A DNA stretch of 64,000 nucleotides from Eutreptiella sp. 'Long Island Sound 2002'. Its lineage: Eukaryota > Protista > Euglenida. A program made the translations under genes and the position numbers. The DNA lies in NCBI GenBank assembly GCA_964036045.1, contig OZ038378.1, forward strand, positions 137,888,001 to 137,952,000, written 5' to 3'. Within the stretch, counting starts at the first letter, position 1. Every line of letters starts with the position of its first letter. Below are positions 1 to 64,000 of this stretch, one piece after another. The notes under the pieces are model-generated. The model had not been told where the DNA came from. It saw only the letters and a list, made by a program, of their open reading frames with translations, and did no database searches.

Positions 1-141
1 CATGAAATTCGTGCGTATTCCGTACGAATTTGACGTGAATCTGCGTGAATTTCGTCCAAATTGTATGTTTCATTGGTGCATTATTCCATCGTTGCTCCCC
101 CTTCCTCCATTGGTGCCTTGCACACTTCTCCCCGCTTGTAG

Positions 142-965
142 GGCCCGTTTCACGCCTGGTCGCCGGACGTCCGGAACCAAGCCCGGCGGCGATTCACGCC
201 GCACCAGCGTGTGCAACTGCCCAAGCAGGAGAGCGAGGTGGCCCACGGCACTGGTTGTGGACGGGCCCCGAGTGCGGCCGGCAGTGAGCACAGTGAGGCC
301 TCTTGGGAGGCACTGCAGGGAGCCACAGCGAGGCCACCTCCGGTGCGGGGCATGGGCAGTCGGCTGTGCGGGAGGTGGTCGTTCCCATGCCGTCCCGCGA
401 GGACTTGGGTACCGCCCGCGTTGACCCCCCCCCCCCCCCCGTGCCCGGGTCACCCTCGCCCACGCAGCCGGATCCGGCCTGGACGCACAAGGTGGCGCTT
501 GGGCGCGACGGGCGGCAGCGGCATCTCTCTGCCGTGTGGGACCTGCCTTGGAAACCCCGTGGGTGCAGGCCGACCTCCGCATCTCCTTCTCCTTCCCCCT
601 TACGATCCAAGGTGGTTCCCACCTGCCCGATAGGCAGGAGCTGATCGGCATGTTTGCCTACCGGCTTGTAAGCGGGCACTAGCGGGTGCCGACAGGGCTG
701 GCGGGAATTGGGGACAAGGGGACGGTGACCAGGGGTGGGGTCGTTGGGCTGAATATGGTCACGGGGGGGGGGAGAAGCGGAAGCCGGAGTGGGTGGACGT
801 GGCATGGCTTGCCATGCGCGTCCACGTGGGGAGTCAGCGGAAGCGGAGGGTTGACGTCATTGACGTCGAGGGGGAGGAGCCCCCCCCCCCCCCATGCCCC
901 CTCCTCCTGGAAGCGGAAAGCCCAGTCCCCCCCCCCAAGGGGACACCGATGATGCCCCCCCCCCC
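142..965 (+). pseudogene. A1 gene 2, 5' part (unknown domain; frameshifts in C-runs)
   Basis: Follows a CTTGTAG acceptor at 141. Translated pieces (VVVPMPSREDLGTARVDPPPP; GRDGRQRHLSAVWDL; PEWVDVAWLAMRVHVG) match A2 26186-26940. Confidence 0.6.
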
Positions 966-980
966 CCCCAGAAGGCCCCG
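966..980. repeat. Left target-site duplication of the LINE (CCCCAGAAGGCCCCG)
   Basis: Identical 15-mer at 9252-9266. The uninterrupted paralogous site in A2 (~27011-27026) has one copy. Confidence 0.9.
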
Positions 981-984
981 TGTC

Positions 985-1905
985 CCAGGGATATGCGGAG
1001 ATTTGTCTGCAGCATTTTGGTCGGTCACTGCACCTTCTTTTGGTGCGTCAGAGATGCGGCTTTTGCGTGTCTAGTTACAGTAACTGGTTCTGGTGACGTC
1101 TGGGGCATCCTGGCCCGTTTCTGTGTGCTTTTGGGGAGTGCCAGTGAGCTGAGAATGGGTATGGCATGTCCATCAGGTGCCCTGAGACGGTCGTGGGCAC
1201 ACGGCGAACCACATGGTGGTGCATGAGCGCGGCCAGTTGCTGCTGGTGGGGTATCACTTGCTATCTCGTGTGCTGCGGTTTGTTTCTGGTGCCTGGTGCA
1301 GATAACACAAGCGCAGTGGTCAAGGCTTCTCAAAGGTTCCAGCGATATGCGGAGATCTATCTGGGACGTTTCGATTAGTCAAAGTAGCTTCTTTTGGTGC
1401 GTCAGAGATGCGGTTGCGTGTGCAGCTACAGTGACTCGTTTTGGTGACGCCTGGGGCATCATGGCCCGTCTCTGTGTGCTTTTTGGGGAGTGCCAGGATG
1501 AGCTGAACCTGGGTATGGAATGTCCATCGGGTGCCCTACGAACGTCGTAGGCATACGGAGGACAACATGGTGGTACAGGAGCTGTTGGGGTGTTGCTGTT
1601 GGGGTGTTGCTCTCTATCTCGTGTGCTGCGATTTGTTTCTTGCGATTGGTGCCGGTAACACAAACAATCGTCAGTGGAAGCGGGTGGATCCAGCAGCCTG
1701 TGGGGCATCATGGCCCGTGCTAGCAGTACTTCGGCTTTGCATCGTGCTGAGGTCTTACAGTAGTCCCAAAGCTACGCGGTGATGTGTCTGGGGCATTTTG
1801 GTCCGTCAATGTAGCTCGCGTTTTGTGCGTCAGCGATGCGGGATCTGCGGGTGCAGTGATTGCAACTGGTTCTAGTGGCGTCTGGGGCATCATGCCCCGT
1901 GCAGA
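985..1905 (+). repeat. About 2.4 diverged ~355 bp tandem units at the LINE 5' end
   Basis: GATATGCGGAGAT...TTTTGGTGCGTCAGAGATGCGG...TGGGGCATC recurs at ~990 and ~1346, and partially at ~1785. Confidence 0.8.
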
Positions 1906-1985
1906 GGTCCAGGCTTAGACATGTTCCTGCTTGCTCTTTGTCATCCTTTGCTGGTTGTGCCCGATAGTGCATGTAGTGAGACACT

Positions 1986-3923
1986 TTGGCTTGTTCGGTG
2001 CGGTTCTTCAGAGCTGGGCTTTACGGGTGCAGTTCTTTCTTATTCGCAATGGTGTTGGATTATTCAGCGTTGCCGCAGGCGGAGCAGGCGCAAGTAGTTG
2101 TCCCACGTCACGTATTTCCACTCATATCAGTGGGAAAAACCCCGGACACAGGGGAATTGGTTCTGGCAGCCAAGCTGTACGGTAAGGAGAAGAAAGAAGT
2201 CCACCGCATCCCGTACTCCGCATCAATTATAACAGGCGCCTGTACCTTTTTCCCAATGTTCATGGGTATGCTCCCTGCTACTAGCCTAGCCACTTTGGCG
2301 GTATCAGCTCCGGACATGAAGGTCGGTGATTGGCGGTCTTGGGGTGACTGGTTCACGGCCAACTGGCCCAAGTGGTCTCCAGATGCTCGGGTTTTGTGGC
2401 AAGCAGAAGTGTGCGATCAGGTTCGAGACATAGATCTGCAGATGTAATGGTCTGCCATGGCGACCGATAAATTTGTATCCATGGTATGCGGAGATCACCA
2501 CATACAGGGGAAACACAAATTGAAGGAGATTGTCCTGTGGTATGCCATTTACAGCCAGTGGTCCAAAGCGACAGCGAAGCTGCCGATTTATGACTTGTGC
2601 ATGGATGTGGAGGAGAGCGCGCTCGACGAGTGCCCGGTCAAAGCAGCGGACTGGACACGGCTGCAAGCAGGTGCGTTGAAGTCTTGGAAGGTATCACTCA
2701 ACAACAGACACGCACGTGATCCAGAGCCCTCGTGGAAGCGCATGTTGAACAGGTCGTCAAGTGCGTCAGACGGGCAGCCGTCAGCCGACGCCGCCCACTT
2801 AGACTCCGTGCTGGAGGACGTTCAACACTACCCTACAGCGGTCGTAGGCGACGCGGGAGCGGCATTGAAAGAACTGATGCTCGCGGCCACGGTGGACTCC
2901 AAAATGGTACGTGGCTTCGATAATATCAAGCAGCCCCAACAACTTCAGGCTGGGCTGTGACTATTGCTGTCCAGGATAACTCCGGCACAAAAGAAGCAGT
3001 TGAGTCCACAACTCGTAGAATGGAACGCCGCCTGCTCGCAGTTAGTCCCCGCAGAAGTCCACTCGTCGGATCGTACGGCGTTCTTGAAGTCAGCCGACGC
3101 AATCCTGACCAAGGCGACACCCTCGGTGAACTGGTTTGAGGTGGGAGCGCACATGCTCTTGGCCGGTATAGACCCGCCCGATAAGTGCGACGAATTTCAA
3201 GAAGTTACAGACGCCAAGTCCATGCGGCGAGCGGTAGCGCAAGTCGCACAGCATGCGCACAGCAAGGTGCAGTTCAGAGTGGTCCTCAAGGAGCTGGCGG
3301 AGGCTGTCCCGCAAGGGATGGATGCGGAGCATGAGGAACCGACTGATGAGTTTGATCGCTTTGGGCAAAGTCCGCAGAAACGCGCAGCCCAGGCACCGGT
3401 GGCCGAGGCAGAGCGTAGTCCTCTCCCCACGAAGGAACGAACAAGCAGCGGGGACACGGTAGCGGAGACATTCACGGCCGTTCCGCAATCTCAAGTCAAG
3501 GACGGAGTGGTGGTGCGGCTGTTTTCGCTCACCAATACACACACATCTCGCAGGTACAGACAGGCAGTCCAGGATGTTTTCGGTGTTAGCTGTAACCTGG
3601 ATGGCTATCAGGTGAATAGAGGGTGGTACCACATACAAGTGCCAAAGGTGACAGTGCAGCGGCTGTTTGGTACGGACACCATAATGACTTTCAAGAGCCC
3701 GAGCGGGTTCACGCTCAATGCGCGCACACACGACCAGCAGGGTGAGCCGTACAGGCAGTACAAAAGGCCCAGAAGCTCAGGCGACTGGGCAGACTAGTAC
3801 GATCGCCCGGCGGACACAGGGAACAAGCAGGCGTATCCCATTTCCATAGGTCAAAGCGCGACGCCAGAGTACATGTCGTATCAAGCGCCATGGGGGGGCA
3901 CGCGCTGGCAGTCTTGGTACTGA
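1986..3923 (+). pseudogene. LINE ORF1 (no recognised domain), 3 in-frame stops
   Basis: ORFs 1986-2447, 2457-2960 and 2964-3797 share one frame, separated only by TAA, TGA and TAG. Reading continues to TGA at 3921-3923. Confidence 0.7.
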
Positions 3924-3974
3924 CTGCCGTATCTGCCGCACGGTTACCCAGTTGACCCCATCACGCACTGGGTT

Positions 3975-6900
3975 GTGTATCAGTGTGCGTGCACTGTGTC
4001 ACGCAAGCATATAAAGAGTTTTTTGCAGTCCTGGTCGCGATTGGTGTTTCCCGAGTCCAGCCTGTTGCCACAAGTCTCCGGTACGAAGGAGGCACGCATC
4101 TGCTGGCAATGCGGTACCCTATGGCAGGCCGGGGGGCCTGCTGAATGTCCAGAGTGTGGCCTGCATGCGTGGTTTGAGGTGGACGGTGTGTCACTACCGC
4201 CGGTCCGTTGTGACCTAAGTTTCTTGCCGTCACACGTGATGTCAGTGTTAGAGAAATTGCCCAGTCCAGTGTTTGTGTTTGTGCTGCACAGACTGTCCAG
4301 GTGGGCGCGTTTGCTTCAGCGGCGCAGCTTGCGCTCAGTGCAGGATAGCAGGGCAAGGGTGTCTCCGCCAGTTTGGCATGCTGATGCCCCGTTGGTGCTG
4401 CACACAGAGCCTCCGGTGGGTGCTTACTCAGAGGGTTGCAAAGCCGTGAAGCCAGGGAGCCCCGAAGTCACAGCGTATCAATTTCTCGTGGGAACACAGC
4501 GGTGTCCTACTTGCTCCAGGGTTCGATGGTGCGACGTGCGTGTAGTGGGTCCAGTGTGTTCAAGCACGCCACGAGCAGTGTGCCTCTGCCGTGTCACGGG
4601 TGTATCGTACATGCAAAAGTCGCTGGCAGCGGCGAGTAGTGTGTGTGTGCGTGATACATATGTCGGCCGTGTGGTACCTCTGTACCTAGTGACGCACTAT
4701 GACTGTAGGAGGGAATGTCCATACGCGCCCAGTCCTGAAGTACTAGGGTGGGCTGATCAATTCGTTTTACCAGCGCAGTCGCCCACTGAGGGATCTGCAG
4801 CGAGTCTGCGAGTCATGACGCTCAATTGTGGCGGGGCTCAGGGTAAGTTAAGTGTCATGGTAGGGGTGGTACTCAGTCACGATCCAGATGTGGCGTTTTT
4901 ACAAGAATGTTGGGACGCAGACATAGAGAGCCGGTTTGCGTTACGGATGTATGTAGTGTGTATGAGTGCAGTGCAAGGACCTGGTAAGGGCATGTGCGTG
5001 TTGGTGCATCGCCGGCTTTGGGCGCCAGAAATGCAGCAGAGTTGTGATGTGCTCATTGATGAACGGTCGTGGCTAGCGGTGCTGCTACACCGTGACACCA
5101 ATGTCGCGACTCTGCTTGTGGATGTACATATGGATCCAGAGATCAATAGCACAGCGAAGGAGGAGATACTGAGTGCGGTGGGTGCCATGATTGACAGGGT
5201 GTGCCCGCACGAGGCAGTGGTATCGGGCGACTTCAATGTCCCCAGTAACAGCAAAAGTATGGTAGAGAGAGTGGTGAGCAAAGGGCACGCACTGAGTAAA
5301 CTGCATATACCGTACGACAGAGGGGAGAAGACCAACTATACGTCTTCAGGACACGCAACAGTGGCCACAGAGATAGATTATATCCTGGTCTCCAAGCACA
5401 TAGGAGTGGCATAGAAGGGAGTGTACCCAAGGGTTTCGACGCACATGGCCCTCGTTTGTACCCTCACGGGTATGGGTTGTCAGCCGGTGCCAGTGCAGAA
5501 GCGCTACAAACACCGAGTAACAACAGAAGACCAAAAGCAGCGGGCGGCGCGGCTGCTGGCCTTGTATTGGTGGTGGTTGGCAGGCACAGGGGCACATCGT
5601 GACGCTTGGGTGGCATGTTACTGGAGCATTGCTGATGGTATACTGCCCCCGAGCTCGCATCGAGTCAGTGCCCAGGCAATTCTAGACAGGGGGAAGGGTT
5701 TAGTAAACAAGGGGGTTGCACAGCGGGAGCTGCGGGCATGGCACGAGGAAGTGCAACAGCACCTGTATGTGCGTGGGGTGCGTATGAACGATCAGGTGCT
5801 GAGTACGGTCAGTATCACGTCACACACCACACGGGCCATACAGCCCACGACCAAAGCGCCACGTCCTTACCCACAACTCAAGTCCCGCGCAGATCAGCGA
5901 CAGGAGGTGCAGGAAGCGCTGCGCACCGCAGCAAGTCAGTTGGAGTTTTATCATATAACACGCGGGCAGTCAGTCAACGTGTCTGTTTTGGTGCATGCGG
6001 CTCAGCCGGGGAAGCAGTTAGCCGCGTGGGACGAACCACATTTTAACACCATCTTGCGCCTGCGCGCGTTGGGTCTCCCCACCAATCCCGCTGACGCACA
6101 GTCACAGCTTGCGGTCCTGCCGCGGGCCCCACAAATCAATGCGTATACTCTGAGAGGGGCACTAGACAGGGGTGGGTCAGACGCCACGTCACGAGACGAA
6201 ATACCGGTGAGCTTACTGGCAGCCATGCCGCACACAGGTGACAAGGCCATGTATACATATACACAGCGGCTGCGCCAGTATCCAAACGCCATTTCCAACC
6301 AGATTCTGCAACTTGGTATATATAAATCAGGCCTCCCGCACCTTTTTCAGTCGTACCGTCCCATCAAATTGGCGTCCGCAGCGAATTCCATGCAGGTAGG
6401 TATAGTACAACACGAAGTGAATTTTCGGGCGGAGGCGGACGGATCATGGGCGGGGAACACGTTTTCATATCGCAAAGGGCTGAGCCCTCAATATCTGGCA
6501 CTTGCAGCGAGAGCAATAGTTTGTGTCGCCCTGTCCGAAGGGGGGGAGGTGCACATAGTCGAGGGTGACGAGTCAGGTGCTTTTGACATGCCGATCAGGG
6601 AGGATGTCGCCAGATGTGGTGCCCACTGGCCCACACAGTGTGCCTACGGGGAGTGGGCAGCGGATTTTTACGGCCGGCAGAAGGTCCGGTTATGGACAGT
6701 GCAGGGGTTGGCACCGCAGGTCGTGCCACAGTTAGGCTTCTCACAAGGATGCAGGCTGGCTGCTACAGCGTACTTGGAGTATGGTAAGTACAGGACCAGG
6801 GGTCTGCAGTACCTGGGTGATTGCTCGTGGGTGCGGGGAGTCAGTCTGAGTGAGGTGGTGTTTAGTGACGATAGAAGGTGGTTCGGCAGAACAGCAGAGG

Positions 6901-9131
6901 AAGCCACGCGTTTGGCCACAGTGGCCCATGTGCTGTCGCAAGACGCTTGCGCCCCAAGCCACCAAGCTAAAATGCAGTACACCCGTTTGCAGCTAGCGCC
7001 ATCACGTATTGTACAGCGGACGCGCCATGTCATATACGTTCACGGCATGCCTGTGGAGTCAGCACAGAGTGTCCCCGAGGTTGTAGGCATAACACTGGAG
7101 CCCCACACAGCACCGCCACAGTTGCTGAGCCGCGTGGTCAAGAGTGCACGCCGTCTGCAGTACTTTATCACCAAGTACCAGCCGAATTTTTTACAGGCTG
7201 TGCGCTCGGTCATAGCGTATCTGGTGTCGCGTGCTGATTACGTGGCTAAAGGGTCCTAGCTGCCAGCACAGGTGCTGCACGACTCACAGGTGCAGGTGAA
7301 CCATTTGTATCGGCGCATCCTGGCCATGCCAGCCGACACGCCCCTGGTGATCTTGCACACTCCGGTGGTGTTTGGGGGATGGGGTTGTCCGCAGATCGCC
7401 ACGCGTGCGGCCTTGAATTTCGTGCAGGGGTCTTTGTCCGCCATCGATAGTCGCAGCTCGCTGGCTCAGACAGTGCTGCGGGAACAGGCCACATGTCCGA
7501 TGCCTTTGCGGCAGGGAGATTATGAGCAGTTCGCGGCTTGCTGCACTGAGGACGGCGTCGTCATACGGACGGTGTCGGAGCTTGCGCAGGGCTCCACCCC
7601 CCCAGTCCTGCGGGCAACACTATTACAGGCGGAGGCGCTGTATGTTACGACGGACGTCCCTGACGGTCCGTTACAGCCAGAATTCGCAGGGGTGGGGATA
7701 GTAGTCACGGACGGAACAGAGTGCCAGGAATTCAGTTTCGGTGTGGTGGCCGCTGCTGTGTCATCGTCTGCACTTGAGTGGCTGGCGAAACTTCTTGCCA
7801 TGTTGCTGCTGCAACACTGCAGAGGTGAGCTGTACATGTTCTGTGATAATGCGTCATTGCAGGTGTCCGCACATAGTACCATAGTTACCACGCAAAGTTG
7901 GGTAGATCGACTGGCCAGGAAGGTGCTGCAGCTCCCTGTGTTCAGCAAAGTCCGCGAGTGTTGGTTGCCAGCGCAGCATGACACACATGATCAGGGTCAG
8001 GCGGCAAGGTGGCAGGCGCAGTCGGACGCACTGGCCACATTTGCCAAGTCCCACCCATCAGCCGTGCCCTTGCCCTGGTCATTACTGCTGTCCTGCGAAG
8101 CGGACGTGTTGATTCCTTTTTTTCAAGATCGGTGCGTGTTTCATCGAGCGCGGTTCCTGTCAGCGCTCTACTCAGTAGCTGTAGCAAGCGCATCTCCCAT
8201 GGCAGACATGGTCCGGCGTCTGGACATAAACACTGACCACTGGGTCGCTGTATGTGAGTCTCATCAGATTACGCTGCAGCAGCACAGACAGGCAGCGTAT
8301 TTGCGCAGCATCGCGTATCTGCCGCTCATGTACTTCGACACACCGCCATGCCGGTTCTGTCACCTGGAGTCCGGTAATGAGGGGTCGCACCTGGACGACT
8401 GCTCGCAGTTGTACGTGCGTGCATTTGCCACCTTTGCACAGGTGGCTGAGACATTCACCGCGAGTGTTCGGGGTAATCAGCAGGCCCAGTGGGATCTGCA
8501 CGTCAGAGTCATGGTGAGCCACAGCGAGTACTGGTGCATGCTGGTGCCCGACTCGCGAGTGCATTTTTTCCAGCATGTCGCGTCACGCCACAGCGAGGCA
8601 CAGGTCCTGATTCTGACCTGGTCTGGCATGTCGTGGGTGAAGTACAAGCACAGAACCGACCACAGATACATTTCCGCAGCGGTAGTGCGAAGCCTTGTGT
8701 CTCAGGTGCTGTCAGGTACGGAACGCGGTCAAGACAGTGTGCCCGGGGTACGCTGGCCCTTGAAGGTGCCTGACGGGCAGCACAGTCCTTATAGTCCGCT
8801 GTCTGTCGCACCAGCAGAGGTTCCCTTGCTTGCACAGCAAATATTAGCTTGGCTGCTTCGATGGGATCCACGTCTGCGCTACACGCACACACGGCCTATG
8901 CACGTGTTTCTTCCCATTCACAACGGGAGTCACGGACCTCTAATGTACCATGTTACAGCTTGTACTCCCTTTTGCTGTCATCGTCAAGTGAGACCACAAT
9001 TACAGCGCCTAGTGGTAGTCTGCACCTGCCTTGGTCAGGCTCCAGAACAATGGAACGTGGTGCAGGCGGGGGTCGGATGGACAGTGTTCGCTGACTCGAG
9101 ATATTCCACGGCGCCGTTAGCGGATTATTGA
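3975..9131 (+). pseudogene. LINE ORF2 polyprotein: Cys-rich N-terminus, APE endonuclease, reverse transcriptase, RNase H, CCHC knuckle; 2 in-frame TAG stops
   Basis: APE: LRVMTLNCGG, FLQEC, GDFN, IDYILVS (4806-5393). RT: YRPIKL, GAFD, GFSQGC, FSDD (6861-6872). RNase H: FCDN, WLPAQH, QSDALA (~7640-8036). CRFC-x8-H-x3-C at ~8350-8403. The three ORFs are in one frame. Confidence 0.9.
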
Positions 9132-9235
9132 CTGGTTCCGCTGCTCGTGTCTTGTGCAGGGTAGGGGCAGGGAGCCACACGTAGAAGGGGGAGAGTGCAC
9201 AACGCCCCCGATCGGCCGTGCCTACGCCCGGGCAT

Positions 9236-9251
9236 ACCAAACCAAACCAAA
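9236..9251 (+). repeat. LINE 3' tail (ACCAA)3
   Basis: ACCAAACCAAACCAAA directly abuts the right TSD. Confidence 0.85.
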
Positions 9252-9266
9252 CCCCAGAAGGCCCCG

Positions 9267-9990
9267 CGTACGGGCACCCTGGCGGAGCGGGCGGAGCGAG
9301 CGGCAGGGGACCGGCAGAGGGGAGCTGCACATGTGGATGAGTGGGTGGAGCAGCAGCAGCAGCAGCAGCACTGCGGGGTGTGGGTGGTCCGCGCGATCAC
9401 TGCGGAGGCCACCAACCGCGACCTCGAGGCTCACCTGTCAAGGGCCAACGAGGACACGCGGGCCGCCGAGACGCAGTTGGCGGCCGTCACGCGGGAAAGG
9501 GACCGTCTCGCTTCCAGGGTGAAAACCCTGGAGCGCGTCTTGGGGACGGTGCGCAAGGCCGCGGGGGGTAGGCAACCGGCACAGACAGGGGAGGGTGCCG
9601 AGGGTGCAGAGGGCCCAACGGCCGAGAGGGCGGGGGGAGGGCACTCCTGCTGGCGTTCTTTACCTTTCAGCTGGCGCGCAGGCATGACATGCCCAGGCTG
9701 AGGGAGCAATAGGACAGATGTCGGCCGTCGCGACGGGGCTCCAGATGGCCCTGCCGGCTGGTGGCTAGTTGGTCGAGTTGGCGACTGTGGCACCCGACGT
9801 GGCCAGGCTCACTGCCGCCCGCGAGGACGTGGGTCGATAGTAACGCCCCCCGCCGCCTCACGGCGGCGGCGATCGACGCCTCTTTTGTCGAGCACGTGGA
9901 GCAGAGCTCCCAATGCTCCGCTAGCCGGAGCTCTGCTCCAGGGGGATGGGGGGGGCGTAGGACTTTGGGACCACCTGTCCCTTCTAACCT
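9267..9990 (+). pseudogene. A1 gene 2, 3' part (coiled-coil segment)
   Basis: ORF 9195-9701 (NRDLEAHLSRANEDTRAAETQLAAVTRERDRLASRVKTLERVL) is heptad-like. DNA matches A2 27020-27730. Confidence 0.55.
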
Positions 9991-10006
9991 GCACGGATGT
10001 TAATGT

Positions 10007-10009
<3 letters not shown>

Positions 10010-10055
<46 letters not shown>
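10010..10055. repeat. (TA)n microsatellite
   Basis: Direct reading; absent at the equivalent A2 position. Confidence 0.95.
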
Positions 10056-10369
10056 GAATGTATGTACATGCAAGTACTGCCTGCAACCGTGCAACCCCCC
10101 CCCCCCCCCCGGCATGGGCAGTTGGACCGACATGTGGGGTACCCCTCCCCACTTTGCGCAATTTTTTCAGCACAAATTTTGGCACGGTCTATATTTTATT
10201 TGCTCTCTCATGTGCCAGCCCTTATTTTACACTGCTGAGGGTGTTAGGCGAAACAATAACACAAGTGGACATTGGACTAGGTGTGCGGTGACCCCTAAGC
10301 TTCAGCCTCTGTTTGCTTTGTTAGGGCCAGCGATGGCAAGAGGAAGAGTCAAAATTTTTGTTTGAAAAA

Positions 10370-10525
10370 ATTTCGCTCAAATTCACGTGAAATTCGTACG
10401 AAATTGGTAAGAAAATCGTACGAAATTGGTACGAATTTCGTACGAATTTCACAGAACCTTCAATATTCACACACATTCATTCACCCCAAATTTGTATGGC
10501 AATTTCACGTGAACCTCACCAAATT
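10370..10525. repeat. Element A motif array (AATTCGTACGAATT-like, palindromic core TTCGTACGAA)
   Basis: Clusters at 1-70, 10370-10525 and 12380-12480 (A1), and at 24100-24210, 25940-26110, 27765-27860 and 29805-29900 (A2). All are non-coding. Confidence 0.85.
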
Positions 10526-10602
10526 TAGTCACCTTGTGCATGGGGATGGTAGAAACCTCCCATAAAATTCTCCTCATTTCCACAGGCTTTGTACTAGACA
10601 CC

Positions 10603-12290: not shown

Positions 12291-12673
12291 AGAACACAAC
12301 ACGAACTGAGAACGTTGTTGCCTGTGGCCAGGGTGCATGCACGGTTGCATTGGAGGGCGGACAAATGATGGGGGTGCACACCGGTAAATTTTGTGTAAAA
12401 TCACATCCATTCGTACCAAAATCGTGCGAATTTCGTACGAATTCACGTGAATTCACGCCTATGAATCGGCTACAAGCTTGCCGGGTTTTGGCCCCTCTCG
12501 TTTTGGGCGCGGTTTGGGCATGGGGCATGGTTTTGGGGCGGAACTTTCATAGGATGATGCCTAATGAAGCTGGGGGAAGAATTTTACCCCCTCAAATCCA
12601 TCATAGGGAACCAAAAATAAGGCGCCCCCCCAAAAACCTCGAAATTCGGGTTGATTCACGCGAATTTTCACGC

Positions 12674-12721
12674 CCCATTCAAACGGCCACTTATCCCCCG
12701 TTCACGAAGGGTACATGGTGG
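12674..12721 (-). repeat. A1 right terminal inverted repeat
   Basis: Reverse complement CCACCATGTACCCTTCGTGAACGGGGGATAAGTGGCCGTTTGAATGGG; near-identical end at 30116-30163. Confidence 0.75.
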
Positions 12722-20057: not shown

Positions 20058-20139
20058 CCCTCTTTGTCCAAGGTGCCTTCCCTGTGTCGCAGGAGGGGTT
20101 GGTCCCAGGCGTGTACCGCGCTTAGGGCCACGCCGCGCA

Positions 20140-39395: not shown

Positions 39396-39399
39396 TATT

Positions 39400-51099: not shown

Positions 51100-54000
51100 C
51101 AACGGCATATGTCCACACTACTAGGAGGGTCAGGCAACTCATTGGTTTGGGGACGCCTTGTGGCAATAGACACTCTATCCCTACCCACAACCCAACCTCA
51201 GGTTCCACACGCCTAGTGGCACGCAGATATGCACGCTTGAACAAAACCCACAGATCTGCCCAGAAATGACCCCAGAATAGTAATTTGGGAAGGGCGTTGC
51301 GACCATCTACGGGCGATTTCCCGGGAGTCATTGGGCTCCAAGGCCAACTGATAGTCGCTCCTCATGCTCCCTCGACGGCTCGGTCTAACACCTCTCTGAA
51401 CTGGCTATATGGCCCTGCCATTGTCCCATACGGGGTCCGGCGTCTTAAAATGGGTTGTTTTAGCGCACACCTTTTCTGGCCTAAAAAGTCCCGAATTGAC
51501 CCCTCCTTGAGGCCATATGAGGACAGGGTTGAAACAATCTACCACATACCCTTGGGGTACAATACCAGTAAGAAAAAGTCACTACCACGTCTTTTGTGGG
51601 GGACTTGTTCCAGGCCAAGCCACCCCTGTTGTTTGGGAATCACCGAAGAGTAACATTTGATCGTCGTCTCCATTCTTCTCAAGCATTAAGCACATTTTTC
51701 AAAGTCACTAGGATAATTACCCTAGCCCCCCCATGAAGTTCACCCCTACCACTCAAGGGAGCAGAGGTATTGTCCTTCATGGAGGTAATACTGAAAGAAA
51801 GTAGGCTCTTCACGCCTTTTTTCTTACAGGTCAAACCTAATGGTCTCCCACCTCAGGACCTAGATACTCAAAAGTTTCATCTACTTATTGTGGTCCTATT
51901 TTGTAACTGTTTCTGAATTCAGTTGCTTGGCCAAGCTGGCCAAGCCATCTTGTGTGTGTGCCCCAACCTACTTGCCCCAGATTCCTAACCAACTCCATTG
52001 CAACCAAAATAGTGCCCATCAAGTGCTTATCACTATCTCCTGGGCTGAATTGCTATCTGTTTACACGCTAAAATCATTTGCTTTGTTTGTAAACCATTGA
52101 AGTTTTGTACTTAAGCCTGCACTATCCTTTGCAGCCTCTTTTTGTTACATGCTTTGATTTGGAAGGAACTACATCCTGATTGATGCTAGCGTTCTCTTGC
52201 CGTTCCTGCTTGACTGCTTTGACTATTTGTATGCCGCTACTAGGCACCCTCGCCGCATCCATCCAACATGATGCCCTACCACATTTGAATGGCCGATGGG
52301 ATAAATGCCTCGCGCAACCTAACGGCCTTTGCACCTGCATGAGGCAGTTGCCGACGTACATCACCAAGTGCACGTGCAGGATGCACCTGCCGTTCGTTTC
52401 TGTGACATCGCCCCGGTGAATGCGTCTCCTCCATCATCCCACAACTCGCCGCCGCCACCGTCGTCCCTTCCTTCGGACTCATCATGGGATCCGGTGGCTG
52501 AAGAGTTGTCTCTACCACCATTTATATGTCCTCTTTTATCCAGGCACTATTTGGGCCCCCATCAATTCGATTGGTGCTACCCACAACTGTCATGTTTTGC
52601 GACTGCCAAGAGTTCGTGCCGAAAAATATGAGGGTCCCCGATATTTAGGAATCTCTAGGCCTCTTGCCGCAGTAATCAATTAACAACCTTGCCTCCTTGA
52701 TCGAAGTAACTTCGACACACCGAAGGAACTTGTGCCGTACGTGCATGTGCTTTGCTACGTGTCTCAATGGAACCAAACAGTTTACTGGGTGCAAGGTTAA
52801 ATTTTGGAAACAGCAATCCCAACCTAGGGTATACCTTGGTCATTAGTGAGGACGTGCCGACACGCTTTCATCTTGTACCCCGTTCGCTTCGCACCCACGG
52901 GCCCAGATTTCAGGATCATAATCGTTACGTACTGACAATTACGTAATGGAATCATGTCACAAAGCGTACCATGATGAAATGCCAATTTTAGGGCACAGCT
53001 CAGAGGGATAAATTAATCAATCCGTCAGCTTTTTGGTGGTCTCCTTTGACACAGCACTCACATGCATATTTCTGCATAGTGCTCTTCAGAAAGCAATGGA
53101 AGTGGCCGCTTTGTTGTGCTAACGCTTGCATGCAACTTACAGCCCTCCACGTGACGATGAAGTACACATGGTGAGCGCCGTGTCACCTCAAACAACAACA
53201 AACAAATGGTTATACACCAGTACAACTACCCGGATTAGCTTGCGTCGAAATTTCCCTCCTTCCACAAAGGTGCCGGGATCCGAGGTCCACTTGACCAAAT
53301 TTTGGGGTCTGCGTAGGCAGCAATGGCCGTAGTGAGTGCCGACCCAGTTCCGTCACCTAGCAAGAGGCCTGTCTGACGCATAGACCACACATGAAATTCG
53401 CTTTGTAAGCCGCCACCAGCCAGCATCGCCGCATACATACAACTTGATGCCCTACCACTGTTGAATGTTCAATGGGATTAATGCCTCGCCCAACGTGATT
53501 GCGTTTGCGGCGTGCCTGACGTAGTTGCCGGCTTACATAACCAAGTGCAGATGCAGGATGCACATACGGTTCGTTTCCATTACATCGCCCCGGTAAACGT
53601 GTCTCCTCCATTATCCCACACGTCATCGCTGCAAATGTTGTCCCTTCATTTGGGCGTGTCATGGCATCATGTGTCTCAAGATCGGCCTCTACGACCATTG
53701 ATATGTTCACTTTCATCCCGGCTCAATTCGGGACGCCAGCAGCTCGATTGGTGCTACCCGTGGATGTCATGGTATGCGAATGCCAAGGTTTCTTCCGAAA
53801 GATACGAGGATCCCCAATATTCAGATACTTTAGGCTTGTGCCATTGTAGACAATTTATGACATTACTTTGTGGACCGAAGTAACTTCGACACACCTAATG
53901 AAGTTCTGCCATACATGCATGTGCTTCGCTACATGTCCCAATGGAACCACACAGTTTGTTGAGTGCAAGGGGAAATTGCTGAATATCGATCCACCAGATG

Positions 54001-57000
54001 TACCTTGGTCAATAGTGAGGACCTCCCAATCCGCTTTCATCTTGTACCTAGTTCTCTTTGCACCCACGAGCCAAGATTTCAGGATGATCATCATTACCTA
54101 CGAACACTTATGTAATGGAATCTTTCCCCCAACCCTTACCATGATGAAGTTCCAACTTTAGAGAAGAGCTTAGAGCAATAAACTAATCAACCAGTCAATT
54201 TTCTGGTTGTCTCCTTTGCCGCAACACCCACACGCATATTTCTGCACAGTGTTCTTCAGAAACCAATGGTAGTGGCCGCTTTGTTGTGCTAACGCTTGCA
54301 TGCAACTTGCGACCCTCCATGTGACGGCGAAGTACACACTATGAGCGCCTTGTGGCCTTAAACAACATCAAGCAAATGGTTATCCGCCAGTACGACTACC
54401 CGGAGCAGCTGACTTTCAACTTTCCCTCCTTCCACAAAGGTGCCGGGATAACACGTCCAGTTCACAAAATTTGGGGGTCTGCCTAGGCGGCGATAGCTGC
54501 AGCGAGTGCCAATCTGCACTCCATCACCTAGCAAGAGGCGCTGTGCTGACACGTAGACCACACATGATTCGTTTTGTATGCCGCTAACAGCTAGCCTCGC
54601 CGCATACATCCAACATCATGCCCTACCACAGTTGAATGGCCAATGGGATAAATGCCTCGCGCAACCTGACTGCCTTTGCGACCTGCATGACGTAGTTTCC
54701 CGTACACCACCAAGTGCAGAATGCAGATGCACAAATGCTTTGTTTCTCTGACATCGCCCCGGTAAATGTGTCTCCTCCATCATCCCACACGTTATGGCTG
54801 CCAACGTCGTCCCTTCCTTTGGACAGGTATGCGTGCTTGGCCCCGGGTCCAATTGGGTTCCTTCTAACTGAGCGAGGGATGGGGTCCGTGGATTAGAGAT
54901 CAATGGGAGGTAGCAGGTTGGTACAATTCTGGTCGGCATATAGATGCTCACGGCGTGTGAGGACATTTGAATGACGGCAAAGTATATGTCGTACGTTATG
55001 AGCCGAGTGTCTTTGTCTTGCAGTGTGCAAGTGTACATAATGAACCACCGAACTTAATCAGTCTGAATGTTGTGTGAGGCCTTCCTTCGGACGTCTCATG
55101 GGATCGTGTGTTTGAAGAGCGGCCTCTACGACCATTCTTATGTCCACTTTCATCGGGCTCCCACGGGCCAAGATTTCATGATGATAATGGTTACGTACTA
55201 ATCATTATGTAATAGCATCCTTTTCCAAAAGCGTATAATCATGAAATGCCAACTTTAGGGAAGAGCTCAGAGCAATAAACTAAATAGTCGGTCAGTTTTG
55301 TGGTGATATCCTTTGCCACATCACTCACATGCATATTTCTGCACGATGTTCTTTAAAAGCCAATGGTAGTGGCCGGTTTGTTGTGCTAACGCTTGCGTGC
55401 GACTTGCAACCCTCCAGATGACGACGAAGTACACATGGTGAGCGCCTTGTCGCCTTAAACAGCAGCATTTAAATGGTTATGTGCTAGTACGACTACCTGG
55501 ATCAGCCGATGTTCAATTTTTCCCTGTTCCACAAAGTTGCCGGGATCACAAGTCCACTTGCCGAAACTCGGGGGTTTGTCTGAGCCGCGATGGCTGCAAT
55601 AAGTGCCAACCCCATTCCATCACCTAGCAGGAGGTGTCGTGCTCAAGCGTTAACCACATATGAAATTTGTTTTTCAAGCCGCTACCAGCCAGCCTCGCCG
55701 CATACATTAAACATGATGCCCTACTAGTGTTGAATGGCCAATGGGATAAATGCCTCGCCCAACGTGACCGCCTTTGCGACCTGCATGATGTACATGCCGA
55801 CGTACATCACCAAGTGCAGATGCAGGATACACATGCTGTCGTTTGTGTGACATCGTCATGGTAAATGTGTCTCCTCCATCATCGCACAGGTCATGGCTGC
55901 CAACTTCCTCCCTTCCTTCGGACTCATCATGGGATCTGGTAGTTGAAGAGGGCCCCTACTGCCATTTATATGACCACTTTCATCCAGGCACTATTTCGGC
56001 CCCTGTCAGTTTGATTGGTGCTACCCACGGCTGTCATGGTAGGCGAATGCCAAGTGTTTGTTCCGAAATACAAGGGCCCCCAATATTTAGACATTGTGGG
56101 CTTCCGCCGCAGCAGTCAATTACAAACATTACTTCCTGGACCGAAGGAACTTTGACACACCGAATGAAGTTTTGGCGTACATGCATGTGCTTCGCTACGT
56201 GTCACAATGGAACCACGCAATTTGTGGAGTGCCAGGTTAAGGTTGGGGAATGACGATCCCAACCTCAACTGTACTTTTGTCAATAGCGACGACCCCCCAA
56301 TCGGCTTTCGTCTTGTACCCGGTCCGCTTCGCTCCCACAGCCCAAGTTTCAAGATGATAATCGTTGCGTACTAACAATTATGCAATACAAACCCATTGCA
56401 AAAACGTACCATGTTGAAGTGCCCACTTTAGGGAAGAGCTCACAGCAATAAACTACGTAGTCGGTCAATCATCTGGTGGGCTCGTTTGCCACAACACTCA
56501 CATACATATTTCTGCACCGTGCTCTTCACAAACCAATGGTAGTGGCCGCTTTGTTGTGCTAACGCTGCATGCAACTTGCAACCCTCCTATTGACGACGAA
56601 GTACACATTGTGAGCGCCTTTTCGCCTAAATCAGCAGGAAGCCAATGGTTATCCGGCGTTACGACCACCTGGATCAGCCCACGTTCAAATTTCCCTCGTT
56701 GCCAGTACCAGCTCCCTGGCACCCACCTGGAGGCCGTGCACCCTCTGAGCCTGTTGGACACACCCACCACCAAGCGGGAGTGCGCCGCGGTGGTGTTTCA
56801 AATCAGATAGCAAACAAGCTTGTTTCGTTGCCCTGTCGTTCATCACACACTATGCACGCACAATGCAATCGACTAGCTAGTCGTGTGTCCGCTGTGTCTG
56901 CCTCTTGGTGCTCCAGCGCTGTCGGTGTTGGCACGCTCCCCTGTCGCAGATGGGTTCTACGCTAGTTGCGTTCAAAAGGTTGCGCCAATGCACGGCGACA

Positions 57001-58380: not shown

Positions 58381-58760
58381 GTTGTCTTTGTCCACCTATG
58401 TACCCTTCTCTTGGAATTTCGAAAAGTGTCTAGAACCAGATACTCTTTGAAATTCCAACCCTGTCACACCCAGTCTTTGACGTCGCAGTGTGTGTTTCCA
58501 GATAAACTAAACAATTTACAACCTTTACGGGGGGGGGGGGGTTCACGAGGTGTCTGTTCCCAGTGTCATACGTCCTATGTACACCGCCATAACATGGAGA
58601 ATGTGTCTAATTCCAGACATTTTGGTGAAATTCCGTGATTAAGATCCTCATTTGAGTGAACAGTGTCTGGTTCCAGACACTGTCCACCAATTATTTGGTC
58701 ACTGAGCAGGTTCGTTTCGTTGTTGTTCACCGCTTCGTTTAGTCTGGTTCTGTTCCACTG

Positions 58761-60513
58761 TTGATGAGCCAGGTGACCAGTGCTGCAACAGATCCCTTTG
58801 GTCTCCTGCGTGACTTCTTACGTGGAGCAAAGTATGGTACACCGCTGGAGCTTATCGATGCCCCTTTACGCGATGAGGAACCAGGTGCAGCCGTGCTTGT
58901 GGAGTTGTGCACACAAATGAGGGTCAACCGGCGAACCAGACGCAGTATGGCAGCGTTGACCAAAGCTCATGGGCAATCACCGTGGCCAAGGTGGTATGGA
59001 GTGTTTGCGCGCTGGGTGTACAGGATGATGCAATTGTGTCAAAAGATGCCTCTACCAGAGGAAAAGGCTGTTGGCTCAATGATAAGTGCATCCAGGGGGA
59101 TGCGGAGACAATTGTCACATGCAGGTCTTGCTGCGGGCCGGTTACCGCCTTTGGGGCAACATGCACATGCCAGAACAAACGCCATCTGGAGATCAATGGC
59201 AGGGAAGCACGTGGTGGTGCAATTTGACAACTGTTATCGCAGACGGTACTGCAGTGACCCGGTACGACCTGATTGCTGTCTGAACGTCACTGCCATGTCA
59301 GTGTTGCATGCAACTGCGATTGCTATGTACCCGGGTTTCCCTACACTTGACAATCTTCTCCACCGCATCCCGCAAACAGCACAGACCATAGCAGCTAGTT
59401 TCCGGGAGTTCCCACGAGCGGTGGACGCTTTGAGGCGAGATCCACCAGAGCTCCAATGCGTACGGGTTCCACTGGATGTGCGCTGAGATAACATTCGTTC
59501 ACTGCAATGGTACCCCCTGACGCTAGCCGATCTGGTCTCTAGCTCCAATGAGGACTTGCTCCACATCATGCAACAATGCCTAGCCATTAGGTTCCCAAAC
59601 GCCACGTCATGTTCGGACATACGACCCCTTTAAGTTGGGCGAGCACTATGCCACTCTCCCAATGCTGTATGGCCGCTGGCACCCTGATAAGTATGTGTGT
59701 ACCATGATGCACCGTAAGTTCTTCCCCATATTGGGCTACCTTGGGCAGCAAATGCCCGCGGTAGCTGAAGAGATCATGTGCCACCCGAAGCTGTTGCACA
59801 TTCAGAAGCCATTTTGTGCCCTATCGTTAGCCACACCCAACGATGAGGACCGCATCTTACACAAGGAGACTTCAATTATGCAGTTTCCGGAGGCATCCCG
59901 CAAGCTACCGCTCGTATGGTTGACTGGACTGAAGAACCTCGTGCACTTCTACATTCCGGTTGCGTTCCTCCTTGGAAACTTGGTTCGTCACTGCAACTGG
60001 GATGGTCGACCTGCACGGACAAGCCGTACGGCCCGCAAAGTATTGGAGTTGAGTTTGGTATTGATTGTAGCCTTGATAATGGACACTGACTGCAACGTCC
60101 CCTACATACGCACCCTTTGTGTTGCCCTTCTGTTGTGGTTACCTTGGAATGACGCCGTCCCGGGCTGTTGTTATGCTGAGGAGCCCCTGGAGGCTATGTT
60201 GAGTCGTCTCGGATCTACGTGCCGCGCATACCCCCAGATGAAGACTGTTGACCAGACATTGGACATGCTTTTGAGCATGGCACCACCAAAGCGCGGGGAA
60301 AAGAAGACGCGGGGGCAAATCCGCAGTGGACTGGTTGCGATTATGTCGTCACGGGTACGCAGGTTCCTGGTGGCCATTACAACGAACCACGTGGTCCACG
60401 TTGAGTGGAACAATGGAAAGAAGGTAGCATTCACTGCCTTCACTGAGGACTTGAAATTCCCAGCGCAACAAGTGGACAACGGCGGTGTGGCCCTCTCCCA
60501 GAGACTTGACTAG
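58761..60513 (+). pseudogene. Putative DDE transposase of element E
   Basis: ORFs 58761-59486 and 59635-60513: VVVQFDN (D1-like), LYGRWHPDKY (His signature), YIRTL...W...EEPLEAMLSRL (E-like). More distant than A, B and C; family not assigned. Confidence 0.45.
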
Positions 60514-61104
60514 ATCACTCTCCACATTGACACGTGCAGCGCGTTCGCCCACGGATGAGTTCTTACGGTTGCTGAGAACTATTGTTCCAGGCAGAGACCC
60601 CCGCGAGCATGCAGGCCGAGATGCACAGGCTCAGCGGTCGCGGGATGCAGCAATTGTGGTAGCAGATGATGACGATGAGGCCCCGGAAGCTGCAATTGTC
60701 TCGGATTCAAGTTCACACCCGTCAGTGGGGGACTTGATAGTGGACGTTGACGCACAAGATGATGAACCACCACTTGTTGTCCTACTGCAGGAAATGGAGG
60801 AGTATGAGGTTTGTGAGTGTGGAGGATGACTCGATCAACTGCTGACACCCCACCGAAGTGGCCAGGGTGCGTCAAAGGTGTGTGTCTGGAACGAGACACA
60901 GGGCTGGACTTGGTTGCTACAGCATCGGGGTACTCCCGCAGGGGCCACTAATGTCAACCAACGCAGTGCTGGACTGATGAGATGCGCGCGTACGTGCACT
61001 GTTGCATTGCTCTACATCCCTGTTTCTCCGCAAAACCACAGCATGCGACCCTGACCAACCGAATACCCTGTTCAGGAAGCCAGCAGAATAAACAACACAT
61101 GCAT

Positions 61105-61485
61105 GTGTGTCCGGAACCAGACACCAACTATTTGTGCCCCATCTAGTGCCCAGAAAAGTACCGTACCCGTCTGGAACCAGACAATTAATGGTTTTGCACC
61201 CATGTCATCTTCTCAAGTCAAGCTGTTGTGTCTGGAACCAGACAGACTGTGTTTTGTGCCCTCCATTGTCTGTAAGGTCATCTGGTTTGTTTCTGGAAAC
61301 GCTAGAATCACATTGGGTAGCCAGCTAAGTCGGAATTATACTGCATATGTGTCTAGGAACAGACAGTGACTGCTTATGCCCTGTCAATTGCCAGAACATT
61401 ACATGCTTGTTTGGAACCAGGCAATAAATTGTTTCGCTCCGGTTGCACACTCCAAAACCAAACTGTTGTGTGTGGAACCAGAAAC
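61105..61485. repeat. Element E motif array (TGTCTGGAACCAGACA palindrome, ~60 bp period)
   Basis: GGAACCAG-like cores at ~61113, 61173, 61234, 61294, 61356, 61413 and 61474. Other arrays at 58425-58685, 62565-62885 and 63920-63990. Confidence 0.88.
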
Positions 61486-61870
61486 ACTGTGTTTTTTACA
61501 CCCCTTTGTATTGCACATGATGTGGTCTGAGTGTGGAAACGGTATGCTCACGTCAGCAAGCCTGGAAAGTTGAAATCACATTGCCAAACGGCGCGCCCTT
61601 GTGTCATTTTGCGTCTTGCGCCCGGCTCGTGCCAACATGTCTGACCTTACGCAAGGTAGCATTGAACCCTCTACAGACCCCTCAATTGATCTGGCATCCC
61701 AATTCAGTGCCGTGCACGATGCCCCATCCAAGCACAAGCGGAAACGTAGTGACACATCAAAGGGGACAGATGGTCCAGTGAAACTTGGTGACCATACTGA
61801 AGACCAGGAGGTCCTGCTGCGCCTCAGCAGACTGTAATGGGACAAAAAAGGGGAGCATGGTCAAATCAGA

Positions 61871-62158
61871 GTGCTGGATGAAGATCTGGTCCAAGACAAG
61901 GTGACAGCGCTACACAGGAATCCACTAGGTGCAGCAAAAATCCGAATCATAGTGTGGCTTGACGCAGTGGGGCAGTACTGGATCTTATCGGGGCGGCATA
62001 TCGCCGAGGCCTGTCGACGCATCTCAAGGGAGTATATGAATGCCCATTTGGTAGTGCCAACATGGTCCGTGCATTTTCTTGCTCAAGTGGTTCGTACGGA
62101 TGTCCCTCTACACATACGGGAGTCAATCGCTGGCATGTCACAGGTATATCGACTGTGA
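61871..62158 (+). pseudogene. ParB/sulfiredoxin-like N-terminal domain (cargo of E)
   Basis: RVLDEDLVQ...NPL...IIVW...YWILSGRHIAEAC matches the ParB-N pattern YxIIxGxHRxxA. Confidence 0.5.
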
Positions 62159-62902
62159 CAGTGCGCTGCGACACTGCATGCCCACACCAGCGCACCAATG
62201 AAATATCCTGCGCCTGTGATGTCCATCTTGATCTGCCTCTTGTGCTGCGTGAATGGCCGCTTCGTCTGTGTTGGGGGGGGGGTAACTGCTGTGACCACCC
62301 GTCGCATCACAGGCTGTGCAGTTCGCCACGACCATGCCGAAGCTGTCTACACTGATGGAACTCCCGCGTGTTGAGCTTGACCGCGATGAACCGGAGGAGA
62401 AATCCATACGAGAACACCTGGGAGTGCTGTACGTGAAGGGTGGCTATACACTGAAGGAGGGGACACTGGTATGCCTGGTGTTGCACAGGGTGGCGGCACG
62501 GGAACTATGTGCACATGCGTCCCTGGCCATGAAAGTTGTTCCATGCAACAACGAAGGCTGTCTCAGTTGTCTGGAACCAAACACCTGATGTATTTCTACC
62601 ATCACCACACGTCCCATCCGTTCTGCTGCGTCTAGTACCAGACATTTAGCAGAATTCGATCATTCGCACACCAGACTGTGTCCTGTTTGTGTCTGGAACC
62701 AGACACAACTTTTTTTATCTCTGTCAAAGGGTGTGCTTGGACCTGCATGTCTGGAACCAGACAGCAACTCATTGATGCGGCCTGTCAAAGCAGAATTCCT
62801 CCTATTGTGTCTGGTACCAGACAGCACCTAATTATTGACAACCATGAGACGGAGATCAAGTCCCCTTGTGTCTGGAACCAGATAACAGTCTGATAGAACG
62901 CC

Positions 62903-63893
62903 TTGGCATTCGAAAATTGGCCACCACCGCTGTTCGCTATGCAGGAAACTGTCACGAAAGCCTGCTTTCCGAATGCCGCCTGGGTGCAAGTGATGGGGGA
63001 TAAGGCTGTAGCTGCTGTCGATGGATTGGAGAGGGGTGGATTGCCAGTAAAGTTGCACTTTCGGAAGTGCATCGAAGGCCTCATCCCACCAGACCTCGAG
63101 TAGGTTACGCAGTACCTGGGCTCCAGCAATGTCTCACTGCCAATGATTAAAAAAACGGCAAAGCAACTGAAGGCGTCACGTCCGTGGGAACATCATCTCT
63201 GCCCCCCGGACAACGACTTGGTTGACCCCAGTCGCCAAATGCCCGGAGAACGGGTGCTATGAACAGAGTCTATTGTCAAAGACCCATGTCACCTTCAAGA
63301 CGTACAATTGGAAGTGGTTTGAGCAGAATCGCTGGCCCCCATGGAAGTATATCGTCACTGCTGCAATCTTGAGTGACCCCACATATGCTCCCCTCCGTGA
63401 TGCCCTTAAACGTCCCCTTGTGAACCCTGAGGTCAAGATCGCTGCTGATGTCAACTTCATCACCGTAAATATTGGGTCTGAGGCTCCAGAGGCTGGGTTG
63501 ACTGACAGCAAGTCCCTGGATGGGGTCATGCATATCACTGGGATGGCATCTGGTACTCCGCTGAACTCTACGGTGGCCAACATGCCGTATTGCATGATCA
63601 TTGTTGAAGTTCCAAAGGGACATATAGAAGGCATCCATTCCAATGTCAGTCGCAATTTGGTGTCTGGGACGCTTGTTCTCATTGTTGGCTCGGCTTGTGA
63701 CGTCGTGGGAGTGGTTGATGGTCTCCGAAAGTTGCACGACAACGAGGGGTTGACAACAATTCGCGTGGCCTGCTTTATTCTGGATCTCTCACACAGTAAT
63801 AGTCGATGGGATTCACTGAGCTATGCATTTTTCCCAAAAATCCGCTGCCCAATATTGCTGTCAGCTGTTGCTACCTGCTGCCTGCTACCATAG
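62903..63893 (+). pseudogene. Cargo ORF of E; C-terminal part weakly Rossmann/methyltransferase-like
   Basis: ORF 63222-63893 contains CMIIVEVPK...VSRNLVSGTLVLIVG, loosely resembling DLIxxDPPY...RxLKxGGxxV. Confidence 0.3.
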
Positions 63894-64000
63894 TCACGTT
63901 GTGTGCACCGTTAAATCCTAAAGTTTGTCTAGAACCAGACACATACGAGGCAGAAGGGTAAATTGTGAGAAAGTGTCTGGAACCAGTGACATCGGCCAGT

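Follow-up and report, generated by a model that had tools for sequence, protein, structure and literature searches.

We have analysed a 64,000-nucleotide stretch of the genome of the euglenid Eutreptiella sp. 'Long Island Sound 2002' (assembly GCA_964036045.1, contig OZ038378.1, forward-strand positions 137,888,001 to 137,952,000). The whole stretch is called the window below, and coordinates are counted from its first letter. It contains cut-and-paste transposons, here called A, B, C, D, E and piggyBac, which carry arrays of short motifs that differ from family to family. On the basis of the letters alone, it had originally been predicted that each multi-gene DNA transposon of the window brackets every one of its genes with arrays of its own motif, as a convergent self-recognition code.

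Transposons of the window and their motif arrays

A and C are three-gene transposons with the gene order g1-g2-g3. Of A there are two copies, both on the forward strand and 75-84% identical, the first of which is incomplete at the window start and interrupted by a long interspersed nuclear element (LINE). The left piece of copy 1 (1-966), delimited by tblastn with g2, consists of an array at 4-36 and the 5' part of g2, and its positions 18-966 match 26062-27015 at 75% in a self-BLAST. The LINE (967-9251, +) lies inside g2; it was recognized by an Exo_endo_phos match and by the break in the homology between the A copies, and it is without arrays. The right piece (9252-12714, +) holds the 3' part of g2, a decayed g3 (10624-12288), arrays at 10372-10454 and 12406-12449, and the right terminus, which ends with GGGTAC at 12714. 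Copy 2 (23897-30156, +), delimited by matches of the terminal inverted repeats (TIRs), tblastn, hidden Markov model matches and arrays, has g1 at 24279-25930, g2 at 26186-27688 and g3 at 27956-29707, with arrays at 24163-24199, 25950-26090, 27775-27855 and 29801-29888. The substitutions between the two copies show no codon-position bias, which means that both are decaying neutrally.

C follows the plan of A, with g1-like pieces, g3 and four arrays. In its left part (18480-23896, +; left boundary approximate), g1-like pieces occupy 19488-20765, the 5' part of g3 occupies 23272-23890, and the arrays are located at 18712-18877, 21307-21455 and 23023-23150. Its right part (34712-36290, +; right boundary approximate) comprises the 3' part of g3 (34714-35538) and, at 35905-36051, the terminal array. 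The g3 profile stops at position 165 before A copy 2 and resumes at 212, so that A copy 2 and the adjacent B are both insertions in g3 of C. The original prediction did not mention this nesting, or that of the LINE in A copy 1.

B (30185-34711, +), delimited by its TIRs and arrays, is a remote relative of A and C. The TIRs are 38 bp long (30185-30222 and 34674-34711), match each other in inverted orientation at 84% over 38 bp and contain the B motif, which is arrayed at 30378-30504, 32521-32604 and 34361-34469. A remote RAG1-like remnant at 33244-34008 aligns to the g3 profile in hhalign with an E value of 1.2e-4 and a probability of 55%. B also has a 108-bp tandem repeat at 31273-31599 with degenerate GGxGDDxIxG units, reminiscent of calcium-binding nonapeptide repeats; the coding is spread over two frames, and the gene is hence broken.

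The piggyBac element (12732-17067, +), identified by DDE_Tnp_1_7, is truncated at the 5' side, at its junction with the end of A copy 1, and it is collinear with a relative at L005:6678-9874. Fetched loci are labelled in this way (L001 etc.), and the close relatives all come from one ENA assembly, ERZ25074135, whose Mb-scale contigs belong to a large and repeat-rich eukaryotic genome. GGTAACA arrays lie at 12736-12960, 13749-14008, 14614-14815 and 16757-16963 (+), with accessory open reading frames (ORFs) between arrays. The transposase occupies 15361-16612, and ATAT comes directly after the right TIR (17054-17067). Of D, a fragment of a piggyBac-like transposase was found at 17257-17498 (-) by tblastn with P0148 and P0163; its sole array (18088-18277, +) consists of eight GGTTGCA units.

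E (58398-64000, +) has a left tip resembling that of A and extends past the window end. Its arrays, built from a 16-bp near-palindrome at a phase of ca 60 bp, lie at 58428-58678, 60884-61483, 62569-62883 and 63927-63988, and more follow beyond the window at the equivalent of 65171-65232 and 66580-66641. There, a unit of ca 1.4 kb comprising gene and array is tandemly duplicated (L012:16277-18579, equivalent to window positions 64026-66328). Neither E nor its ORFs match the g3 and g1 profiles, and Pfam scans give no family for them.

The motif counts were compared with dinucleotide-preserving shuffles of the 64-kb window, the C 18-mer and the E 16-mer being counted at up to two mismatches and the A motif TTCGTACGAA as exact matches. 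The A motif occurs 8 times against 0.04 expected, the C 18-mer 8 times against 0, the B motif GTAGGAACC 5 times against 0.4, the piggyBac motif GGTAACAC 25 times against 1.9 and the E 16-mer 21 times against 0.05. For the D 7-mer the window-wide count is marginal (24 against 15.5 expected, with 4 of 100 shuffles reaching 24), and it is only by the packing of eight copies into 190 bp that D joins the other five as a real and clustered motif.

The motif sites form discrete clusters with a spacing of 0.6-2.6 kb. Mapped by their sites, the A clusters lie at ca 19, 10393-10446 and 12410-12441 in copy 1 and at 24182, 25965-26072, 27803-27834 and 29816-29880 in copy 2, those of C at 18715-18874, 21310-21430, 23026-23125 and 35908-36006, and those of piggyBac at 12756-12930, 13749-13997, 14618-14815 and 16757-16963, while the clusters of B and E have the array coordinates given above. 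A matrix of motifs against elements places inside their own element 17 of the 19 A sites, 14 of 15 for C, 34 of 41 for piggyBac, all 5 for B and all 17 for E, compared to 8 of 24 for D. A de novo search of the window for locally clustered 8-mers recovers these transposon families only and finds none in the 8.3 kb LINE, a Gypsy remnant and a 1.17 kb tandem repeat, which shows that the arrays belong to the cut-and-paste elements and not to the region. The family specificity and near-confinement that had been proposed by eye are thus borne out. Across seven element copies, no motif site falls in a coding body (binomial p 2e-7 to 6e-18); some ORF ends reading into an array were trimmed for this test, and the boundaries between arrays and coding parts are therefore partly circular. 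The arrays lie at the ends and between genes, in non-coding DNA, as had been noted. As to the bracketing of the genes in every multi-gene transposon, A, C and piggyBac have the proposed layout, while D has a single array and is not multi-gene here. In B and E the arrays are present, but the genes that they would bracket are decayed or without identification.

The three-gene family and its transposase

More than 100 relatives were obtained for the longest A ORF, all of them in ERZ25074135; a scan of JGI (Joint Genome Institute) metagenomes gave just two short loci. Young A copies at L001 and L004 have common termini, three genes on the same strand (g1 of 677, g2 of 505 and g3 of 587 residues) and four arrays of perfect 11-bp units.

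By sequence, g3 has no match in Pfam or the PDB, either as single sequences or as a profile. An alignment of 16 relatives, down to 27% identity, was used for an AlphaFold2 model, which has a predicted local distance difference test score (pLDDT) of 83.4. In Foldseek, the model matches RAG1 with an E value of 1.3e-10, a probability of 1.0 and a template modelling score of ca 0.5, followed by the Helicoverpa Transib (HzTransib, 3e-7) and the amphioxus BbRAGL (3.5e-6), while Hermes reaches just 1.8e-3; no CACTA, KDZ or Zisupton structures were among the competitors in this comparison. Conserved in the alignment are D167, D243, C266 and C269 (CxxC), H472 and H477 (Hx4H) and E497, whose counterparts by published numbering we take to be D600, D708, C727/C730, H937/H942 and E962 of RAG1. 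The spacing of these residues is RAG1-like, with the RAG1 numbering taken from the literature and not from a structural alignment.

In the 4-5 copies where the A termini could be compared, there is neither a 5-bp duplication nor a CAC-type terminus. The ends read GTACCCTTCG...CGAAGGGTAC in these copies, preceded by T and followed by A. With no sequence match in Pfam or the PDB, no 5-bp duplication and no CAC terminus, g3 is not filed as a Transib member; it is RAG1/Transib-like in its modelled fold. In the A-type ends of the window, L001, L004 and L007, GTAC always has a T to its left and an A to its right, and the ends may fit a palindromic TGTACA target with a GTAC duplication. GTAC is also the core of the array words of A, C and a further family, F.

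The resemblance of g3 to Transib, RAG1 and ProtoRAG lies in the model, which matches the RAG1 core, HzTransib and BbRAGL at E values of 1e-10 to 6e-6, and in the RAG1-like spacing of the conserved residues. Unlike Transib and RAG1, the three-gene family has two extra genes in the same orientation, and no RAG2-like partner was identified. The family is a divergent RAG1-like transposase lineage, according to the modelled fold, and as such an interesting by-product of the analysis.

PDB sequence searches with g1, g2 and g3 and their profiles gave nothing significant. A match of g2 to a C/EBP bZIP protein was rejected as not significant (E value of 0.26); reading the g2 sequences alone, one finds AT-hook-like cores, GRP. 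For g1, the single-sequence structure is poor (pLDDT 38). The g1 proteins of several families, including that of L004:10001-12034, have the pattern G-x-Q-L-P-H-x-D ... G-D-x-L-L ... H-H/R-G, in which the HxD...H part looks like that of iron/2-oxoglutarate oxygenases, a likeness seen in reading the alignment and without database support. The g1 and g2 genes of the window A copies (24279-27688) are 39-60% identical to L004:10001-13739, compared to 76% for g3 and an array word that is the same, which suggests either mosaic elements or a faster evolution of the accessory genes.

Recurrence and conservation of the arrays

The layout with four arrays and three genes recurs in the A copies at L001 and L004, in C, in family F and in a family at L003. 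Family F (L004:1-5700, minus strand) has the order g1-g2-g3 and three CGTACGCG arrays; between its g2 and g3 there is an extra ORF of 188 residues (L004:936-1502, -) with an HxD...H-like pattern and no Pfam match. In the L003 family, whose g3 is 53-62% identical to that of A, TTCGCGCGAA replaces TTCGTACGAA in the same layout of paired half-arrays. All A-type words follow the scheme TTC-N4-GAA and vary in their centres, those of close relatives differing by two central bases, and motif and family diverge together. In relatives of g3 from other water metagenomes (L009, L011), array-like clusters precede the gene and consist of palindromes of their own.

The element named piggyBac does belong to that superfamily. 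The window ORF matches DDE_Tnp_1_7 only weakly (E value of 2.8e-4, 20.7 bits against a cut-off of 22.4), and PF13843 is recorded on intact relatives. The element at L005 is bounded by 14-bp TIRs and a 4-bp duplication, ATAT, and adjacent satellite units supply the empty site; the duplication rests on one informative copy, and the canonical target-site duplication (TSD) of piggyBac is TTAA. With one TSD and an empty site, all the arrays of this piggyBac must have moved as one element. The motif begins 2 bp inside the 14-bp TIR, and the transposase ends, as judged by eye, in a cysteine-rich tail. The layout recurs in L005, L006 and L007. Relatives that are 80% and 63% identical have GGTAACA arrays in every spacer, while one that is 40% identical has GGATGCA instead; at 63% identity, the alignment is limited to the arrays, the right end and the coding sequence of the transposase.

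Arrays thus occur in unrelated superfamilies, RAG1/Transib-like and piggyBac, to which hAT can be added for end arrays only, as seen in a short derivative with the ordinary inverted kind. The proposed convergence is plausible between the RAG1-like elements and piggyBac, but A, C and B are related and are not independent cases. A further element at L005:12001-15028, without family assignment, has dense GTGCACA and GCACGCA arrays.

The A copies have common termini amid unrelated flanks, and together with the L005 duplication and empty site this confirms that the arrays belong to single mobile units. In E, the 16-bp core is conserved and the phase of ca 60 bp is kept, with spacers at ca 0 bits. 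A non-autonomous A relative (L007:116-5027) has kept both termini and both internal double arrays, with three inter-array segments that are unrelated to g1-g3. These features are signs of selection on the arrays, which are conserved like the terminal repeats while the other non-coding DNA diverges. Unit numbers differ between young copies.

The motif is found in or beside the TIRs of B, piggyBac and A, the A TIR carrying TTCGTGAA and GTGAA/TTCAC units, and each start codon is preceded, at a distance of 20-130 bp, by the end of an internal array. The palindromes of the RAG1-like families are CpG-rich. Excess hairpin potential was obtained for A and C (z of -7 to -12.7), compared to z values of +1.1 for piggyBac and -1.1 for E, which means that the common property of the arrays is the repeated word and not the fold.

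The remaining features of the window lie outside this system. The LINE has a frame at 1980-9698 (+) of ca 2570 codons, without frameshifts and with seven substitution stops; these are a mixture of TAA, TAG and TGA, and an alternative genetic code was rejected for this reason. Its 5' end (982-1900) consists of three tandem monomers of ca 350 bp each, and the endonuclease is the only recognised domain. A decayed Gypsy-like remnant with reverse transcriptase and integrase zinc domain lies at 42449-44806 (+), surrounded by inverted arms of ca 125-140 bp that are ca 9.7 kb apart (39401-39833 and 49273-49529). The 1.17 kb tandem repeat (52226-56700) has four units that are 78-84% alike; repeats of similar period with the word AAAATGGG are found at L003:12755-19700, inside a transposon, and at L004:17634-18960, the likeness consisting of the period and the word. 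Pfam matches among the ca 70 ORFs scanned, with broken ORFs taken as separate pieces, are limited to the LINE endonuclease, piggyBac, the reverse transcriptase and the zinc domain of the integrase. The window gave no matches in Rfam and tRNA scans, and a search for relics of dinoflagellate spliced leaders found none.

Possible readers of the arrays

Three systems described in the literature are relevant for the interpretation. In the Arabidopsis element VANDAL21, the motif arrays to which the VANC protein binds are specific to the family and are found at high density in non-coding DNA, both intergenic and intronic as well as terminal; these arrays are tandem repeats with rapid gain and loss, and related families differ by about two motif bases (PMC5735166). 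TnpA and the Mu transposase (AtMu1) activate their cognate copies via clustered motifs (preprint 10.64898/2026.08.24.746577). In piggyBat, the transposase core and a C-terminal cysteine-rich domain bind repeated subterminal motifs (PMC11707139).

The confinement, recurrence and conservation of the arrays, the presence of the motif at the ends and its divergence together with the family favour private binding sites, as does the match to these three cases. We therefore consider the arrays to be putative clusters of binding sites for an element-encoded protein, serving both end recognition and gene activation or anti-silencing, and to this reading we would give about an even chance. Each family would encode its own sequence-specific DNA-binding protein that reads its arrays. 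The most economical candidate is the transposase, as its recognition word would also be the one in or beside the TIRs; the alternative is a coiled-coil accessory protein, found in RAG1-like and piggyBac families. The end arrays would mark the element for transposition, while the internal ones, upstream of the start codons, would act as private promoter or anti-silencing modules, such that all genes of cognate copies, and of these alone, are turned on or kept open by a product of the element. The arrays would evolve by gain and loss of tandem units, with the word drifting along with the family.

Several observations weigh against this reading. Pfam and PDB searches revealed no recognisable DNA-binding domain in the accessory proteins. 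The right-terminal arrays have no downstream gene, so that the arrays cannot serve as promoters alone. In some internal double arrays, the first half abuts or enters the end of the upstream ORF, which would also fit a role at the 3' end. Finally, the piggyBac families that share the motif also share an accessory protein (48% identity over 172 residues); since transposase and accessory protein are conserved together, the piggyBac comparison fails to tell which of them reads the arrays.

A more far-reaching version was also considered, in which the transposons would carry a demethylation system that is addressed by sequence and linked to transposases from a distant and hitherto unrecognised branch of the RAG1/Transib-like group. 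Here, every cut-and-paste family of the genome, regardless of its transposase, would need a private code at its gene boundaries, without which the genes would be silent. In the RAG1-like families this code would be the CpG-rich palindromes, to which g1, as an enzyme with the oxygenase-like pattern, would be brought to erase the silencing mark. As a whole, this version is rather unlikely.

Among the other explanations, the one that survives best is that the arrays are transposase sites for transposition only, the internal ones helping to assemble or loop a large nucleoprotein complex in which the ends of an element of 5-7 kb meet, or damping activity. The position of the motif in or beside the TIRs and the retention of arrays in the non-autonomous relative at L007 speak for this, as does the finding that the piggyBat transposase binds repeated subterminal sites that restrain activity (PMC11707139). 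However, the presence of arrays in every spacer, just upstream of each start codon and not at random in the non-coding DNA, is left unexplained, and classical elements manage with subterminal sites alone. A role in transposition only is thus possible but clearly not the more probable option.

A second option is that no specific protein is involved and that the arrays are by-products of cassette exchange during gap repair combined with replication slippage, persisting at gene boundaries because they offer the homology for swapping inter-array segments between related elements. The pairing of A termini and arrays with unrelated cargo in L007 can be understood in this way, and so can the differences in identity between g1/g2 and g3 relative to L004, if these reflect a mosaic, the varying unit numbers in young copies and the duplicated gene and array unit of E. 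Slippage does not account for a conserved core amid unrelated spacers at a fixed phase, as in E, nor for the survival of the same word in piggyBac families of 63% identity that have lost their other non-coding similarity, and it does not put the word in the TIR. We regard this explanation as unlikely.

Recruitment of host transcription factors, a different one for each family, is comparably improbable. Words with TTC-N4-GAA form, GTAC core or CACGTG core resemble the sites of common eukaryotic factor families, the A-type words share the first of these forms with different centres, and the arrays lie just upstream of start codons. On the other hand, differences of two central bases between close relatives are a better fit to a private reader that co-evolves with its word, the words are nearly absent from 22 kb of non-transposon-like sequence and from the retroelements, and the word is also part of the TIR.

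Hairpins or cruciforms that serve as terminators, mark where a polycistronic transcript is processed or give rise to small RNA would agree with the long and near-perfect palindromes formed by the half-arrays of A and C and with the position of the first half-array directly after the upstream ORF. The piggyBac and E arrays have the same placement without excess folding, and a structural role is therefore quite improbable. That the internal arrays are separately inserted miniature inverted-repeat transposable elements with their own TSDs, for which an inverted pair flanking the first C array (18605-18675 and 18787-18857) could be cited, has next to no chance and is already contradicted, because the arrays occupy the same internal positions in independent, diverged copies and lack TIRs or duplications of their own, and the whole piggyBac unit has one TSD with an empty site.

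Returning to the private binding sites, the closest parallel is with VANDAL21 and VANDAL6, which are likewise multi-gene elements (Mutator-like, from Arabidopsis) with a family-specific short motif arrayed in intergenic and terminal non-coding DNA. The gain and loss of tandem units and the difference of about two motif bases between related families are further parallels. The differences are that the transposases here are RAG1/Transib-like and piggyBac and not Mutator-like (VANA), that the motifs are mostly palindromes, phased at 11, 22 or ca 60 bp, with paired half-arrays flanking every gene, and that the host is a protist or alga and not a plant. VANC-type binding and hypomethylation are putative here. 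A VANC-like protein was not recognised, and the accessory ORFs have no Pfam family. As with TnpA of En/Spm and AtMu1, there are family-specific clusters of at least four cognate motifs, for which binding by an element protein is predicted; in those elements, which belong to other superfamilies, the clusters are subterminal or in the TIRs, while here they also lie between all internal genes. With piggyBac and piggyBat, the window element shares repeated short motifs inside the ends and a transposase with what appears to be a cysteine-rich tail. Unlike canonical piggyBac, which has one gene and end repeats only, it has accessory genes with arrays between them, and the one clear TSD, that of the L005 relative, is ATAT instead of TTAA.

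The principle as such is already known from plant Mutator-like and CACTA elements, where private arrays and their element-encoded readers have been worked out to date. What is new concerns the superfamilies and the host, and also the strictness with which paired, phased and mostly palindromic arrays bracket every gene. The divergent RAG1-like lineage bears on the history of the RAG recombinase, and the compact predicted protein-DNA pairs, in which small gene sets go with words of 10-16 bp, might find use as orthogonal regulatory parts. If the arrays are indeed read by element-encoded proteins, multi-gene DNA transposons would seem to have evolved self-addressed activation repeatedly and as a general strategy.

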